Below are positions 45,783-55,587 of a DNA stretch of 64,000 bases, in pieces. The stretch comes from Geosiphon pyriformis uo1 (Eukaryota; Fungi; Glomeromycota). The notes beneath the pieces are model-generated. The model searched no databases. It had not been told where the DNA came from and saw nothing but the letters and a program-made list of their open reading frames with translations. The number at the start of each line of letters is the position of its first letter. Position 1 is the first letter of the stretch. A program made the position numbers and the translations under genes. The stretch lies in contig JAAOMT010000128.1 in assembly GCA_016748015.1 (NCBI GenBank), positions 441,538 through 505,537 of the forward strand. The letters are read 5' to 3'.

Positions 45783-48700
45783 ACATTATTCTAATTATAT
45801 GGCTTTAGAATCATGAAAACTTATGCTTTTTTTTATAAAATAGGAATTGTTCTAACAACTAGACAAGCATTTAGCAAAACCAAAAAACAGACCATAATTT
45901 CAGAACTATAGTGTTTTCATAGCTTATTTAAAATGTCAAACAAAACAGTAGTTTTGCTATCTGACAACTCTTCTACAACCCAAATTAACTTTTCCATGCT
46001 AATATATTCTATAATTCCAGAAAATATATCATCTTTAATAGTCTAGAGGCTTGTACTGACAAGACCAAAAAATTAGTCCCACTTTAGACACCAATTTTTT
46101 TTTGTCTAGCCTTCTATTATTACATCTATTCTGTTTTTTAACAATTCAAGTTTCAAAACCAATTCATTATCTACCATTAAATAATTTAATATTACTTTAT
46201 GAAAAAGTCTTTTCAAAACACTCTTAATTATTTAACTCTTATTAATACAAAAATTTTCTATTTTCTTATTAATGGCATTTTTGATTACAGTTGTTTTCAA
46301 AGCTTTAAATTCTTAATACTTAAATGCTCTAACAATTTTTGAAACCAAAATTTCTAATCTGTAGAACTTAGAAAACTGTTTATTCTTAATAATATTAGAG
46401 TTTTTAAACCATTTTTTGGAAAAAATTTTGTCTGTAGATTCAACTATTACCTTCCTCAAAAAATTTTATATTGTATCCATCTAAACTATTTGCATTCTAA
46501 AACTCATTCCATATGCAAGACATTTGTTTTGTCAAGTATTTTTTAAATTGAATTCATTTTAAACTATCTGCATTCTTAAATCCAAACTTTTATTGGTCTT
46601 TATTAGTCTGCTTCTAAATAATATTTAGATGTTTATTAAGAAGTCTATTTAAACCAAAAAAAATAACAACAGTTGAATAATTGGTATTGAAAAAATTCAA
46701 AATGTTTTTAACCTTTTATCTAATCACAGTCATTAAAAGATGTTTATTGACAAAAATATAATCAATAGTTTTTTTCATATTTCTTAAATTGCTTCATGTT
46801 AGGAGCTTAGCTGCTGAAAAATTTGATAGAAAATTATACAAACCCAACTCAAAACATTTCTTAAAACTTGTACTTTATCTCATATTATTCTTATTAAAAT
46901 TACTCTTTAATATTATATAAGAATTTAAATTGACTGTTTTAACAATTTAAAAGTTTATTTTAAAAGTCTGGTTAAACTGTATACCAGCTGAAACATCTGC
47001 ATAAAGACTCATAATTATTATTAAAACTTTGTTGCTAAATAGCAGACAAATTAAAAAAAGATGATTCAGGACTTCAAAAATCTTATACATATGTTCAACA
47101 AGCTTATTGTTTATTATTATAGTCACTTTAGAGCCCAAATAACCAGAATTCAAATCAGAAATAAAAATTTTTAAACCCAAAAACTTGTTTTTAATTCAAA
47201 ATTTAGACAGTTTTTTTAGCTTTGTCTTAGTAATTACAGAAACCAAATTGTCCAATTCTTTATATTACTTAATAATATTATCTTGTTTTGCTAAATTATT
47301 CATATTTTTAACATTATATATAGCAATTTTTCAAATAAAATTGGTTATTAAGGAAATATACTTGCTGAAAAATCCAAATTAATGCATATCTAATTCAATT
47401 TAAACAAAATTAATCTGATTGTACTCTTGAGCACAACCAGTTTTGATTTCAAACTACTTACTTTTGCTATCAAAATTTTGAAGCTGTTCTGATTCAAATC
47501 TAAAGTATTGGTTACTATCAACAAAAAAGGTGGGAACAAAATTTGCAAGATATTTATAATCATATCCAAATCTAAACTGGAATTCAAAACCAAAAAAAAA
47601 ACTAAAGCAAAAGATTAAAAGACAGATACCAAAAAAATCAGTTCCATATTATTTATTCTGTACAAAACACCAAAAATCTGGTTAGCCAATAATTCCAATG
47701 AGCATTTCAAAGAAACCAAACAAGCTTCAATTAATAAAACATGTTGTGAAAAGAGAAAAACTTTTATAGTACTTGGTATACCAAAAAAAGAAAAACCAGA
47801 ATTAAAGAGAACATTATTATGAACAGAAACCAAAGACACAACCTGAGCCTATAACTTATTATTAAAAACAGTAGAACAGAAAATAGGAACATCTTTTTTT
47901 ACATACAACTTAATCAATAAAAGTCAATTTTTATCTAAAACAGTCTTTTTAAATATTTTTGAAGACTTAAAAGTAAATGTAATCAATGTATTATATTTTA
48001 AAACAAAATATCCAAAACATTCACACTTTTTACAACAAACCAAATTCATTTTAGTTTAAAAAAGCTTTATACCATCAAAAATTGGCTTTGTATAGAAAGT
48101 AAATTTAAGTTTTTCTTCTAAATTAAAGCCAATTACAGTATAGTAGACCTTATTACTAGTTTTGAATAAATAATTAATAATGCAAGTTTTTTTATCAGTT
48201 TCTTTTAACAAAATAATCAGATTATAAGTTTTTGTTCTTATTGGCAAAGTAAATAAAAGTGCCTTAAAATAATTCTTTAACATTTAGACATTACAATTTC
48301 TTATGGCTTTGGCAATATACATTAAATCTTTCCTAATTAAGAATGACTATTTAGCTGCTAACAAATTTGCCTAAGCCAATTTGGCAAACTTTACTATAGC
48401 TTTCTGTCATAGTTCAATCAGCTATAATTAAATTAACACTATCTAATCATATTTAGTTATTATGACAATGATTATTTTTTTTGGCATGTTTATAAAAATT
48501 TCTTTAATTATCACAGCTCAATCTGACTTAATTTTTTGTTTTTTAAGATTATTATTTACTTTAATGCTCTTTTTTTTGGCCAATAATATGGTCTTTTCTA
48601 TGTTTTTCTCTAATGTAAATGTTGATTTAATAATCTTCTTAAATTTTAAGGAAATAGTAACCCTTCTAAAACCATTAATTAATAAAAAAATCTTCTTAAT

Positions 48701-49200
48701 AACCTAAGTTTTTACTATTGCCAATTTGTCTTCTATTACAAAAAAATTAATATTCAAAGCAAATGATTTCTTAACAACAACTTTTATCTGAGTTTTAATA
48801 ATTTTTGGGTCAATTTACTTCTTGTTCAAAGAAATAGGTAAGCAGAAAAGAAAGAAGACTTCATTTTTATTATCTATATTATAGACCAGAAAGCCAATTA
48901 AAAAACCAATTATAATATCAATGTTGACTTTTTTTGTTTTAAATATATTTATTTTAAAATCTAACTAAGTTTTATTCTTACTATTAGCATTATTATTTGT
49001 ATTCATATTAGCAAATTGACCAGCAGTTTTTTTTGAATTTTTAAAACTTAAATTTGTTTTATTATTAGAATATTTAATATTGTCAAGTAACAATTTTTGC
49101 TTTTAAGCCAAGCTTCTATTAATGAAATCTAAAGTTACAATCTTGACTGATTTTCTTTTAGTATTAAAATCATTTATAGTGATAGTTAGTTTGATAACAA
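45783..49200 (-). mobile_element. Highly decayed non-LTR retrotransposon (LINE): ORF1 about 47390-49170, then ORF2 APE endonuclease and linker, truncated before RT by element C
   Basis: Minus-strand translation gives APE-like motifs (LVSVITKTKL, SGYLGSKVTIII, KKTIDYIFV) and ORF1-like FKALLFTLP. Confidence 0.7.
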
Positions 49201-50430
49201 AAAAGTTTAGTATTTAAAAAATAATGAAATATACAACAGTAAAACAGAAAAAACTTTTTTTAAAATTCTGAACTTTTTTTTAAAAATTGGGACAAAAGAG
49301 AAAAAAAAGTTATTAAATAAATTAAGTTAAAAAAATTAACACAATTAATATTAAAAATATAATAAATTTAATATTAAGTAAAATAAATAATTATTAATGT
49401 TAAAAAATTTTAATGCAGAATTTTTAAAATTAATATTGAATAAAAATATATTATTGTAATATAATATAGTTTTAATTAGCTTAAATAGCTAATTATATAT
49501 AAAAAAATATAGTTTATGTTTAATATATTATATTTATATTATATGTTAATAGATTATAATTAAACTATATTTACATAAACATTTTAAAGAAATACAATAT
49601 TTTTAATTATAAATGGTTTATTATTTATAATAAATATTAAAAAACTTTTTAAATAAAATTTTTTATAATTAAATTACAACAAATATTGTTAACAATATAA
49701 TGTTTACAAAAAAATTAATATTAAATTATTAAAATTAAAGAATCATAATTTTTAAATTGATTAATATCTTTTTTTAATTAGGTTTTAATTTGTTTAATAA
49801 CCAAAAAACTTATAAAGATTTAGTATTTTATTATTATTATTATTATTATTTAAAGAAACATTTTATGGCACCATTTCCTGGTGTGCACATTTTGCACAAA
49901 ATAACTAAATTTGGCGTAGTTGGTAATAATGAACTTCGGGGAATGATAATTCATTCTCATTCTCAAATTAGAAATTTTCGTACTTTTGAAATCGTCGATG
50001 ACGTAGAGGAATTTTTTCAGGCGGAGATATATTGAAACAGTCTCGCATCAATTTCTTTTTCCAAAATCCCTGATAGATCTCTTTCACTCATTAGATATAG
50101 GTTCAACTACTTGAAACTAAACTCACCAAACCATCTATCAGGATTTTTACGTCTTAAATTACTATCACAGATCTCGGTCGAATTTTTAGTTCGCTGCAAT
50201 AACTTTTAGTTTGCCTTTAATTCACATCTATCTGACCTTTAATTTCCTGCTGAGTATTTTAGCTCAACTAAAATACTTCAAAACCATCGGTGAGTAAAAC
50301 CAGTGAAAAAATTCTAAACGATCTCGCTAAACAATTTTTTGTGCCAAAGGCGCGTATTTACTTGGCTTATCAACGCCGAGGATAAATTATCTCACTATGC
50401 TTTTTACTCATGCGCGTCTTTTCAGCAAAG

Positions 50431-53400
50431 ATGGTTGACTACAACACAATCGTTCTTTATGACGACTTGTGCACGGATCTACTCGTAGACAAGGTCGAAT
50501 TGTGGTATGAAAATTTAAAGATGACATGCTTTTTCATTTTTGATAAATTTCCCTCACGCTCATATGCAAAATTGGAAGTTTTATGCTTTGTATTTACTCC
50601 AAATCTCTTTAGGTTTCGAACCCACAAAATGGACAGTCGATATCTGCCTTTGGATCCTGAAGATGTTACAACAAAGGCCGCGATGGTTAATGTCGCACAA
50701 ACTTTGAGATTCTTGATAGCGAATCCAGAAAAGGCAGACATAGCTGTTCAGATGCTCACCAAGTATGAAGATTTATGCGATAGTCTCTTGATTATATGTC
50801 ATCTGCATAAAATAAAAAAAACACTGTCTTTCTCAGGGCGCATGTGTTTCAAGAACGACTTCCTTCACTTGATCTTGCTGCCAAACGCCCAACAAAACAG
50901 GCGAAGGCTTTTTTAGAGTGAGTATTCTTGAAAACTTTGATACATATCAAAAGTCAATATTTACTCTTTAGATTTTATTTTAACTTGCATCTTTAGTCAT
51001 AATTAGGCAAATTCACATATGATAATAGCATATATATATTTTCGTATATCCAATTAATGAGTTTAATTTTATACTTTAGGCATCTTAAAAGATACCTAAA
51101 TATGTATCGGCCTGATGCCGGGATTGAACTCGGCGAGACTTTACGCTACTCTAATTCAAACAAAGCCGAGGCTTGCATAATTGCAACCAAACACTGGACA
51201 AAGGGAGAAATCATTCGCTATTGCAATGGAATCCTTGTGGAATTAACACCAGAAGAAGAATCAAAGCTGGATGATGAGAAAGACTTCTCGATAATTGCCT
51301 CCGAGCGCAAGAAAAGAAATTGTGTTTACGTAGGTCCTGGGCGCTTTGTCAACGTAAACCTAATCTCCAAATTTTGCTAGTTTTCTAACGAATAAAAATT
51401 CAGATATTAATTTACTTATATTTTTGTTATTTTTAAGCATGACTGCGATGCTAATACTGCTGTAAGATTATTTGTACTTTTGAAGAATATTTTGTTAAAC
51501 TTTTGGATAACTTTATAATTTTGATTATTTTTAGTTTTGGATTCAAGGATCACAACATATTGTGTCATTCCAAGTACGGCGAGACATTGCTATCGGCCAA
51601 GAAGTTACGTGTTCCTATGGAACAGACTACTTTGGGGATGGTAATTGTGAGTGTCTTTGCGTCACATGTGAACGGTAAATGTATATTTTTTTACCTCAAG
51701 ACGCGCAATCGATTTTTTTTGCTCAATTATCAAATTTCAAAACTCGAAACATTTTGCATCTTTTACCAGCTTAAAAAAGGGAGTCTTTGCCAATAGGAAT
51801 GTTACAGGTCAGGATGCACCAAACTCCAGCTCATCTGAGGTGAATGCACAAAGTAATAATGAAGAAGAGGTGACGTCCAGTCCTGAAATTGGAGTACGGA
51901 CCAGAGGATATCATCGTGGTCAGTTGTATTTCACGCTAACAAATTGCTGTTAAATATCTATTTCTCGGAATACTGAATTCCCAATTTTTTTGTACATTTT
52001 TAGTTCGATCATCAAGAGTTGCGCAAAAGTCAAAACAACCGAACCAATTTCATCCAACGGTACCAGCGCAGCAGCCTTCACGAGGGAACTTTCCGACTTC
52101 ACCAAAGTTAATGCAGCGCTTGGGTCCAATTCCACCACCCAAATTAGTAATGCTAAAAGCATCAGATCAGGAAGCTCTGAACACTTCCTCAAACAAAGTT
52201 TTAATTTCACAGATTGATCAACAATCTCTAGCTCAAATTTCACAAACATCCCAAAATGTTTCAAAAATGTTTCAAGCTCACCATCAAAAACAAGTTTCTC
52301 AAGACCATTCCCAAGATAATAGTAAACTTCGACCACCTTTAAAAGGGTTCAGCAAACCTGACACGCCACAAGGTCCGATCGCTTCTTCGAGCAAAGTTCC
52401 ATTTTCGCACATTGATCGACATTGGCCTCGAATTTCGCGATCTTTCCAAAGCGCTACAAATAATTATCAAGGAGCTCTTCACCAAAACCGATTCGTCCAA
52501 GAACGTCATCAAGATAACGGCGTATTTAAACCATCTGAATTAGTAAGTTTAAAGACATCGGAACAGCACACTCCGAACATTTCCTCGAGCAAAGTTCCAA
52601 TTTCGCAATCTTATGAAGCATGCCAAAAAGAAGGTGTTCAAGAGCGTGAAGAAAATAATGGCGCTATTAAACCCCCCAACCTTATAATAAAGACTTATAA
52701 ACAACCTGAAGGGCAACAGGCTCCGGTTTCACAAATTGATAAACAACGTGCTCACAATTCCCACTCTTCTCAAATCGATTCAAATATCTCTCATCAAAAA
52801 AAAATTGGTCAAACACATCAACAAAATCACGCTTTGCTTCCGAAAACCTCTCGGTCGATATCTACTCAATCTAATCTAGATCTGGAGAGCCAAATTCCCC
52901 ATTCAATTCTTCCTAATCAAATATCTGCAATAGAGGGACAATCAAATCAATACATGACCCCAAACGAGTACAAACCGAACATTAATACTAGTCGAACACA
53001 TCAATTTATACATTTAGCTAATAATCCCCACTGGGAGCATATTCTTTCGAACGGTAACATAAATGCTAATCAGGCACATCAATTTGCACATTCACATCAG
53101 TCCATGAATTGCGAAAATATACAGAGGAATTTTCAAATGGCTCCCGGAGTGGGTTTTCCATGGGTTGTAAGTCAAACAGTTCGGCCGGGTGAAACTGTTA
53201 CGACTGGATTTTCTATCACGGCTGGTTTTTGTGTCTCAATGACTGCCGGAAAAGGTCCCACACCGATAATCCCTCAGTACCTCATGCAACACGCAACCGC
53301 ATTGCCGAATGCCGGTGCTGTCTCTAGTCCCAGAATGGCGATCAATTATCTTTGCAACGACAACATGGTGATTGACGATTCGACGGCCGCACCACAGGAA

Positions 53401-54600
53401 CCGCAGGAGCCGCAAGTTTGTCGTAATCGTGGCTGTGAAGGAGAAGCTGGACCCAATGATCGTTTATGCCGAAGATGCCGACGACACCAAAAGATATATC
53501 ACTTGAGGTGGCCGATGCGAGTAGCAGAAAATACCCAAGTAACAAACGAGCAGCTTATTCCTCGAAGGGTAATATATATAATTATTGTTTTCTTTTTAAT
53601 GATTCCATTTAAAAAATTTTACAAACCTCCTTAATCTGATTTTCTAATTAAGTTGCCTACCCGACTGCATCCTACGGCCTCTACGCGACAAGTGAGACCA
53701 AGTAAAATGATCAAGAAGGAATTACCACGGGTGATAGTAATGGAAATGGGGGAAAAGCCCACTCGTGATTGGCCTCCTCACGATATCGGGGAAGTTGCGT
53801 TGACTACCAAATCATATACAACGTCAAAAGACTGGGCAGGTCGTAAGGGAATTGAAGGTTAGCCATTGACGATATAGAGCAAAAAAAAACCAAAAATTTC
53901 AGTTTAATAGATTTAGGTCTCTAAATTAAATGAATCGTTGCCCTTTTTTAGTGCACGAATACGATGTCCAGAATAAAAGCCTGAAGTTCCGGTGGGACCA
54001 CCAAACAGGTCACGTACACATCACCCCCATGTGGAAGTCAACGGGGAGACGACCACGTGCGTTGGGTGATGTAATTGGAAGGGATCCTAGGTGGAGCCAA
54101 GCTGCCAAGAAAATTATCGGAGGCTGTCCAGAACTTCAAGGCATCTGGTAGGCAAGATTTTTTACATTGTGATTTTATCTAATCATCTTGAACATTTTAC
54201 TTATAATATTCATTATACTTTCGCATTTCATCCCTATTCTGATTTGACGAAATTACTCAGGCTCCCTTACGACGCCGCTCTTTCTTTCTGCAAGGAGTTT
54301 GAGGTGGAAAAGAAGTCGGTGGAGGTGATTTTCGGGCGTAGTTGGTGGGGAGGGGAGGAACAGATGAATGTAGATGTTGTGGAGAGTTCATCGGTGGGGA
54401 AAAAGAGAAGAGGGGGGGAAGAGCCTGAAGAGAACGAGAAGGGCACTAGAATCAAGCACCGGAAGGTGGACTCGGACAAGGCACTACGTTTTGTAAGAAA
54501 TGCAACAGTTTTGGGGGCTCGTCGCGTTCCTAACGAGATGGAGTTGGGTTTTCTTATTGATCGAATTGGGAGACTTACGTCTTCCAATGTAGGCCATTAA
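50431..54600 (+). CDS. set9: Set9/KMT5-type histone H4K20 methyltransferase with a C-terminal APSES/KilA-N domain, ~1065 aa, 11 coding exons: 50431-50504, 50613-50762, 50837-50917, 51080-51353, 51438-51461, 51535-51674, 51770-51918, 52004-53568, 53653-53857, 53952-54147, 54261-54600
   Basis: Hand-spliced GT-AG introns keep one frame. Motifs: [69 protein letters not shown], then [16 protein letters not shown]...KKIIGG...QGIWLPYDAA. Probable 5'UTR intron at 50290-50425. Confidence 0.88.
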
Positions 54601-55587
54601 AGGATCCAGTAACAATGTTGGTGTCATTCGCTTGGGCAACGAATGGCATCTACTCGTCATGCTGAACTGGGGTTGCCTCAACGTGAGGCAGACGGGAGAG
54701 TAAGAGAGCGCAGGAGAAGCAGATTGAGCTAAGGTGGTCTTGCTTCACTTAAATTAGGTCAAATTTTCAAAACAAGCCAACACACTCGAAAATCGAAAAC
54801 TCGGGACCAACAAACCAACTGCTTAATAGCAATTAAACTCAATCATAACCTTGGCAATTCTCTCTTACTTTCAAGTTTGGTCAGTGACATTGTATATAAA
54901 TTGCCCATTCAATGACAATAATATGTAGATAAACATGATAGTGTTTGAAAAGGTGTTGGACATTTGATGACTTTTAGAAAGAGTTGCAAATAAAATAGAA
55001 TTTGGACATTTCCTAAGTAAAAACTTTAGGAAATTTGGTAATCTTCAACGACATCCAGATAATAATAGTTAGCTTCTTTAACCCCCTTTTTCATCACTTT
55101 CGAAACTTGTATATATGGCATCCAAAGAACATTTTGTACATAGAAAACCCTCATTAGGGACATAGAAGAGGTGAATTAAAGATTACATTAATTTTTGGAA
55201 AATTCCCAACAATCCATTTTCTCTTTTAATTTCCCCTCAATTCTTTTTGTCGTCAAGATACTCAAAGTAATCCTTAATGTAATTCAAAAATAATTGGTAA
55301 TCAATTAATAATTACCTTTTCGTCGCCGGTTTCACCAAAAACAGAATATTTGTATAGTTTTTGTATAATATAATGAGCAATCAATTGAGTTCCCTTTTAG
55401 TGGGTTTATTATTCCTCGATTGAAGCCATTCTCTAATAATTTGATATGAATATGAAATGCGATGCTCACCTATTTGAAAGCTAGCGCAGTTGAATTGTAA
55501 ATCTTTATGTTGGCAAGATTTCATTTAAATTATGGATGATGATGCAGAGTGGCCTCCGAAGAAAAAGTTTTAATCTTTGTAATTAAC

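Follow-up and report, generated by a model that had tools for sequence, protein, structure and literature searches.

The 64,000-nucleotide stretch of Geosiphon pyriformis uo1 DNA analyzed here (the window; contig JAAOMT010000128.1) carries at 50431–54600, on the plus strand, a locus that raises a question about how histone methyltransferases find their targets: do the coding sequences for a Set9-type enzyme and for an APSES-type DNA-binding domain belong to one gene, and what might such a domain do for the enzyme? Described Set9/SUV4-20 enzymes are recruited in trans, through the PWWP protein Pdp1 or through HP1, and to our knowledge no H4K20 methyltransferase carries a transcription-factor-type DNA-binding domain. 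When the exon coordinates were re-derived from the sequence and its three-frame translation, 11 exons were obtained, totaling 3198 nt (1065 codons plus stop), with GT..AG borders at all ten introns. This reproduces the exon count, the splicing, and the 1065-residue frame of the original prediction, which had been read from the letters of the window alone. Here, we propose a reading that is, taken as a whole, on balance probable: the locus is a single gene, Geosiphon's only KMT5/Set9, with an APSES domain inserted between the Cys/WP motif and the C-terminal tail, and DNA-guided recruitment is the most likely mechanism (Table 1).

The searches were performed with individual exons or, in place of the spliced products, with the database proteins P0001–P0004. 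Exon 10 is matched identically by the database protein KAG9304212.1 (P0001), a "hypothetical protein" of 1157 amino acids from G. pyriformis (Glomeromycotina, Archaeosporales); it is the automatic model of the same locus and shares the exon 8/exon 9 join. Residues 25–330 of P0001, covering the N-domain, the SET domain, and the post-SET region, matched ten solved KMT5B/C chains with E values of 4.5e-32 to 2e-29, and other SET families matched at 4e-5 or worse. Exon 4 alone aligned end to end with KMT5B/SUV420H1 (E 2e-10), and the Pfam SET model scored 4e-11 on KAG9304212.1. In the exon-by-exon Pfam scan, a weak SET match on exon 6 was the sole result and KilA-N gave nothing; divided among exons, the domains fall short of the length that the models need. 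The features common to S. pombe Set9 and human KMT5B are also found here: an N-terminal helical domain, a SET core with the NHDC motif, which spans the exon 4/exon 5 join, and a post-SET Cys cluster. The conserved Tyr and the post-SET Cys stretch lie in exon 6 and can be aligned to KMT5B, and the CxCLCxTCE form of the cluster also occurs in other fungal Set9 proteins. The helix motif that opens exon 1 likewise opens the Set9 proteins of Coemansia and Geranomyces. CxRCxRHxxI[FY]..WP is shared with Set9 of chytrid, kickxellomycete, and basidiomycete fungi (Geranomyces, Coemansia, and Coprinopsis) and with the Ambispora proteins P0002, P0003, and P0004. All motifs that had been noticed before (NHDC, the post-SET Cys cluster, CxRCxRHxxIY..WP, and a basic cluster resembling a nuclear localization signal [NLS]) are therefore present. 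By the similarity of its N-domain, SET, and post-SET regions and by these motifs, the protein is a member of the KMT5B/C (Set9/SUV4-20) family, with predicted H4K20 activity. One locus in the 128-Mb Geosiphon assembly matched the SET core, and a second canonical set9 was not found in this genome; the window gene is thus Geosiphon's sole Set9.

The domain encoded by exons 9–11 was assigned by its profile, its modeled fold, and its relatives. A profile built from the domains of three species was compared with 177,635 PDB sequences and matched PCG2 (E 9.6e-4) and Mbp1 (E 0.0066–0.012) over the whole domain and nothing else. With the AlphaFold (AF2) model of the domain as the query, the top four Foldseek matches were all APSES (probability 0.82–0.98). 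VIA-align superimposed the model on Mbp1 with a Z score of 8.0 (root-mean-square deviation 2.6 Å for 90 of 98 residues), followed by PCG2 (7.3), Bqt4 (5.7–5.9), the first unrelated fold (5.3), and the N-domain of Swi6 (4.7). In the Atlas, the nearest clusters by language-model features were "HTH APSES-type"/KilA-N (score 0.90, 203 of 256 features shared). Exon 10 alone gave no usable match in the PDB or in the Atlas, and the complete domain, as present in P0001, was required. A paralogue in the same genome, on contig C791 (64197–64376), is 32% identical to exon 10 and has the signature RGGFLKIQGTW. Profile, modeled fold, features, and same-genome paralogue agree in identifying the domain as an APSES-type winged helix. 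The original prediction had called it Xbp1-like; its closest matches among solved structures are Mbp1 and PCG2, and the RGGFLKIQGTW paralogue is the one lead toward the Xbp1 subfamily. The domain, approximately residues 886–1008 of KAG9304212.1, starts at approximately 53800 in exon 9, and this exon consequently belongs with exons 10 and 11. The APSES gene on C791 is split by an intron, carries the signatures KYSTSLDTRGYIP and RGGFLKIQGTW, and is, apart from the window locus, the one place in the genome that matches exon 10; its family may be the source of the inserted domain.

That the enzyme and the domain belong to one gene is indicated by comparison with Ambispora. In Ambispora gerdemannii, P0003 (835 amino acids) combines SET with the same APSES-type domain. 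In its gene the frame stays open from the WP motif up to a GTAAAT donor, which is followed by an intron of 79 nt, homologous to window 53569–53652, and by a phase-0 acceptor. The peptide preceding the intron 8 donor is conserved and in frame with Set9, reading NEQLIPRR in Geosiphon and NEQQVIKK in A. gerdemannii (pattern NEQ.I.[RK][RK]). A second Set9 of A. gerdemannii, P0004 (671 amino acids; contig CAJVPL010000262.1, 4001–6580), has no APSES domain. The P0004 gene keeps the phase-0 junction intron (58 nt) after ..PPIIKK; behind it, a single exon encodes in one frame a basic linker, then an acidic and a basic segment, and finally the tail LRFAKNATV..RFISNRINRLSY. This tail is homologous to the post-APSES tail of P0003 (E 4e-27) and to that of window exon 11. 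Set9 coding sequence therefore flanks the APSES domain on both sides, which makes the domain an insertion in Set9 and intron 8 an ordinary internal Set9 intron. As judged from these alignments, the domain was inserted into Set9 or was cleanly lost from the P0004 paralogue. The deposited C-terminus of P0004 uses a final intron; the unspliced frame ending in ..RFISNRINRLSY directly before the stop matches the orthologues better.

The single fused gene of the original prediction is thus borne out by the junction intron of P0004 and by the ancestral Set9 tail that follows the domain. The 84-nt, phase-compatible gap between exons 8 and 9 was also confirmed, and the paralogue is stronger evidence than the earlier argument that a gap of this size leaves no room for a promoter. 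The protein had been described as ending in an APSES domain; the domain is indeed present, but it lies between the WP motif and the Set9 tail and is not terminal. All eleven exons are found in the same order on a contig of Ambispora leptoticha, and the alignment of the Q/S/P-rich linker with Ambispora is restricted to the last part of the linker. In both Ambispora species, the fused Set9 is directly preceded, in the same orientation, by a gene for an Ariadne/IBR protein (RBR E3 ligase).

Table 1. Features of the set9-APSES gene of Geosiphon pyriformis and its upstream neighbor in Ambispora. Positions are those of the window unless a contig is named.
Feature	Position	Strand	Remarks
Exon 1	50431..50504	+	Start codon and Set9 N-terminal helix motif; 87.5% identity to the syntenic Ambispora leptoticha exon
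Exons 2 (50613-50762) and 3 (50837-50917)	50613..50917	+	KMT5 N-terminal helical domain; aligns to the KMT5B N-domain
Exons 4 (51080-51353), 5 (51438-51461), and 6 (51535-51674)	51080..51674	+	SET core, NHDC motif, post-SET Cys cluster
Exon 7 (51770-51918) and bulk of exon 8 (52004-)	51770..53418	+	Long Q/S/P-rich linker, poorly conserved
Fungal Set9 C-terminal Cys/WP motif, C..C..CxRCxRHxxIY..WP	53419..53514	+	End of exon 8 (52004-53568)
Intron 8	53569..53652	+	84 nt, GT..AG, phase 0; the disputed join; homologous introns in A. gerdemannii
Exon 9 (53653-53857), first part	53653..53799	+	Basic linker from the WP motif to the APSES domain; weakly conserved with P0003 and P0004
APSES-type winged-helix domain	53800..54348	+	End of exon 9, exon 10 (53952-54147), start of exon 11 (54261-); contains introns 9 and 10
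Conserved Set9 C-terminal tail	54349..54600	+	Acidic stretch, basic NLS-like cluster, LRFxRNATV..RIxRL motif, stop 54598-54600
3' untranslated region	54601..54800	+	cDNA contig extends ~376 nt more, to roughly 55176
Ariadne/IBR gene of Ambispora	A. leptoticha contig 764-1447; second Ambispora contig 911-2797	same as fused Set9	

The APSES core is 84–86% identical between Geosiphon and Ambispora, with a nonsynonymous divergence (dN) of 0.09 and a saturated synonymous divergence (dS). The corresponding values are 80% identity and dN 0.12 for SET exon 6 and 96% identity and dN 0.03 for exon 4; because most exon pairs are saturated at synonymous sites, dN and one ratio are the usable measures. The linkers show 33–46% identity. 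These values indicate that the APSES domain is under strong purifying selection. Exon order, orientation, and phase are conserved although the synonymous sites are saturated. The architecture appears to be old within Archaeosporales because it is common to Geosiphon and Ambispora. In a tree of the SET region, the P0004 paralogue is placed outside the Geosiphon and A. gerdemannii fused copies, with weak support (81/79). Exon 10, searched against 1.84 billion representative proteins, matched KAG9304212.1 and an A. leptoticha fragment and nothing else, and no canonical APSES factor was found among these proteins at E 0.001, which restricts conclusions on subfamily and origin. A word-based protein search with the APSES region returned Geosiphon and A. 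gerdemannii only. As far as the 1.84-billion-protein library shows, this APSES subtype and its fusion with Set9 are confined to Archaeosporales. Full-text literature searches gave no report of a SET-APSES fusion and none that connects APSES with Set9 or H4K20. Both domains are known; their combination in a Set9-APSES architecture is new, conserved, and probably functional.

Several observations weigh against this reading, at the level of the join, of the transcripts, and of the domain. RNA evidence consists of the contigs of a public run (X1), the sole run that contains the locus; X1 can be taken as complementary DNA (cDNA) because its contigs are spliced. Introns 4–7 are removed exactly as modeled in contig 1 (51148–52262), and introns 9 and 10 in contig 2 (53828 to beyond 54800), which is colinear with exon 11 (54261–54600) through the stop. 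Six of the ten introns (4, 5, 6, 7, 9, and 10) are thereby confirmed, and introns 1–3 and 8 lie outside the contig cover. No contig or read of X1 crosses 52263–53827, which includes the exon 8/exon 9 join at 53568/53653. A. leptoticha provides a second point of doubt: compared with A. gerdemannii, its contig CAJVPS010008303.1 (4640–4770) has a 10-nt deletion before the canonical donor that shifts the frame and creates a TAA overlapping an ATG (TAATG). The deposited partial model of this species uses an upstream GT donor (R|GTGTCT), which restores the frame. The deletion may be an assembly error in single-nucleus data, may reflect a shift of the donor, or may be a real split of the fusion.

The uncovered join and the A. 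leptoticha stop could suggest two adjacent genes, a Set9 and a small APSES factor, mis-joined by predictors, and ab initio models often merge neighbors. Against this stand P0004, in which the same intron is followed by the Set9 linker and tail in a single exon, and the homology of the tail behind the APSES domain. The pre-donor peptide, in frame with Set9 in both Geosiphon and A. gerdemannii, also argues against two genes, as do the order, orientation, and phase kept across saturated synonymous sites. Two mis-joined neighbors are effectively excluded by the Set9 coding sequence on both sides of the domain, and we regard this explanation as highly improbable. The original prediction had named separate transcription of the APSES exons as the outcome that would speak against it; on this point the comparison answers for one gene.

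If one gene is accepted, it could still produce an additional APSES-only or Set9-only isoform from an internal promoter or by alternative processing. The nominal depth of the 3' cDNA contig is 64.4, and that of the SET contig is 10.8 (~6x); this difference, which tells against a single full-length product, could fit 3' bias or an extra internal transcript, and contig depth in X1 cannot rank parts of one gene. Intron 8, if retained, brings an in-frame stop, with which a Set9-only protein would terminate after 21 further codons, and the TAATG of A. leptoticha just before the canonical donor would also suit separate products. The contig start at 53828 was considered as a transcription start and rejected. 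Both X1 contigs are preceded by the same nongenomic 11-mer, TCTCGGCCGGG, which ends in GGG, and in the other contig it sits in the middle of SET exon 4; moreover, 53828 falls within the first strands of the APSES fold. Both contig starts are thus truncated cDNA ends, since the same 11-mer is found mid-exon. The 11-mer resembles a template-switch-type adapter left in Logan's contigs. A conserved Met in exon 9 able to start a separate open reading frame was not found when P0001 and P0003 were compared. Taken with the truncated cDNAs, this makes an extra isoform improbable.

The gene structure given here differs from KAG9304212.1 at three places. The automatic model begins with 30 additional residues taken from the AT-rich sequence upstream of the gene, and a start codon at 50431 agrees with the N-terminus conserved in Set9. 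It places the exon 3/exon 4 acceptor 12 nt downstream and loses HLKR, which is conserved in Ambispora. It also has an additional last intron after ..NEMELG that is absent from the cDNA contig; this intron is unsupported because contig 2 runs unspliced through the stop at 54598–54600. Homology favors the earlier version of the gene over KAG9304212.1 at the exon 3/exon 4 acceptor and at the C-terminus, and the cDNA favors it at the C-terminus as well. The region directly upstream (window 46000–50000) has a guanine plus cytosine content of 15–25%, compared with 34–47% in the gene, and may be repetitive or similar to regions altered by repeat-induced point mutation.

At the level of the domain, the question is whether the fold reads DNA. 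The wing residues were read from the profile alignment against the contacts of PCG2 (PMC4333399). In PCG2, the QxGxGxxQ motif of the wing reads the CGCG core, neither Q82 nor Q89 is dispensable, and helix A, helix B, and the 20-loop give further contacts (PMC4333399). The domain shares fold and register with Mbp1 and PCG2 over ~90 residues, together with the wing signature GG..QG.W.P. Its wing, IGGC(P/T)ELQ, has the same length as that of PCG2, and the equivalents of Q89 and G84 are invariant. In place of Q-x-G-x-G-x-x-Q, however, it reads I-G-G-C-P/T-E-L-Q: Ile stands where PCG2 has Q82, and Pro or Thr where PCG2 has G86. The Mbp1-type wing with both glutamines is thus not found in the domain, and Mbp1-like specificity is not expected because of these two substitutions. 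Helices A and B are joined by a basic turn (RRPR or LRPR), and helix A retains a Lys and a Thr equivalent to PCG2 contacts. Three species share the Gln equivalent to Q89, the GG pair, and the basic residues without change. Judged by these residues, the domain seems able to bind DNA, but not to read the MluI cell cycle box.

The same substitutions would also suit a different role, in which the fusion is real and the APSES fold is a protein-binding or tethering module that places Set9 at a nuclear subcompartment or partner. The APSES folds of Bqt4 and Swi6 can bind proteins rather than DNA, and both appear among the structural matches (Z 5.7–5.9 and 4.7, respectively). Bqt4, whose binding partners at the nuclear envelope are Rap1, Lem2, and Sad1, resembles the Geosiphon protein in having an APSES-like fold outside the classical transcription-factor context; the S. 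pombe protein differs in that its fold binds partner peptides and in that it has a transmembrane anchor in the inner nuclear membrane and no enzyme domain. The divergence of the domain points in the same direction. Pfam KilA-N (PF04383) found nothing up to an E value of 10, whether it was applied to the exons, the annotated protein, or the excised domain, and a genome-wide scan with this model missed the window locus; the domain is divergent, since the model does not score it. Against the main reading stands also the modest confidence of the AF2 model, with a predicted local distance difference test value (pLDDT) of 62.7 and a predicted template modeling score (pTM) of 0.62. Of the proposal that the C-terminal region would score and fold as KilA-N, the fold and the profile matches to Mbp1 and PCG2 hold, whereas the Pfam score does not. 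On the other side, the DNA-binding Mbp1 and PCG2 are clearly better structural matches than Bqt4 (Z 8.0 and 7.3 versus 5.9) and the sole sequence-profile matches. The wing of Swi6 is shortened and that of the Geosiphon domain is not (PMC4333399), and the Gln equivalent to Q89, the GG pair, and the basic residues do not vary among the three species. We consider a tethering role rather unlikely.

DNA-guided recruitment by the inserted domain thus remains the preferred mechanism. The APSES domain, aided by its flanking basic stretches, would bind DNA, and the DNA-bound domain would bring the SET domain to nearby nucleosomes. Some of the H4K20 methylation would then owe its position to DNA recognition in cis, and not only to readers like Pdp1 and HP1. 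H4K20 catalysis, DNA binding, sequence specificity, and target class are all predictions from the coding sequence. As a bolder extension, the sole H4K20 methyltransferase of Geosiphon might be guided by a sequence-reading APSES domain to DNA-encoded addresses, such as the promoters of repeats or transposable elements, by a PRDM9-like principle that would have been stable since before the split of Geosiphon and Ambispora; we hold this to be possible, if doubtful. The repeat-directed, PRDM9-like part of this proposal, already raised in the original prediction, we infer purely by analogy. The likeness to PRDM9 is conceptual, in that a histone lysine methyltransferase has its own DNA-binding module in cis, zinc fingers in PRDM9 and a putative one here. 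The two proteins belong to unrelated SET subfamilies (H3K4/K36 for PRDM9 and H4K20 for Set9), and their DNA-binding folds are unrelated. In addition, the Geosiphon domain is highly conserved and gives no sign of a rapid evolution of specificity.

Compared with other Set9/KMT5B-C proteins, the Geosiphon enzyme is distinguished by the APSES-type winged helix within its C-terminal region; compared with APSES factors, its domain is distinguished by lying inside an enzyme, whereas theirs is N-terminal and accompanied by ankyrin repeats or bHLH-like regions. The same C-terminal region carries other candidate modules elsewhere in fungi. After the WP motif, Set9 of Coemansia (P0005) and Geranomyces (P0006 and P0009) gave PWWP matches with E values of 0.012–0.02, below the Pfam cut-off, and the C-terminal part of Coemansia Set9 gave a Tudor-knot match (3e-6). 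These matches suggest that, in contrast to S. pombe with its trans-acting Pdp1, such Set9 proteins have reader domains fused in cis. As a lead rather than a result, they also suggest that the C-terminal region of Set9 may be a general docking place for targeting modules.

As Geosiphon's sole Set9, this natural and conserved KMT5-APSES chimera makes the idea of DNA-directed H4K20 methylation directly testable; in it, a virus-derived APSES fold was taken into an enzyme rather than into a transcription factor. The architecture is a lineage marker for Archaeosporales, and the Ambispora paralogue without the domain provides a natural comparison. These organisms are hard to culture, but both domains are amenable to study in vitro or in fission yeast. 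If the bolder extension were true, Set9-APSES would embody the PRDM9 principle in a fungal, H4K20-specific form within a repeat-rich genome.

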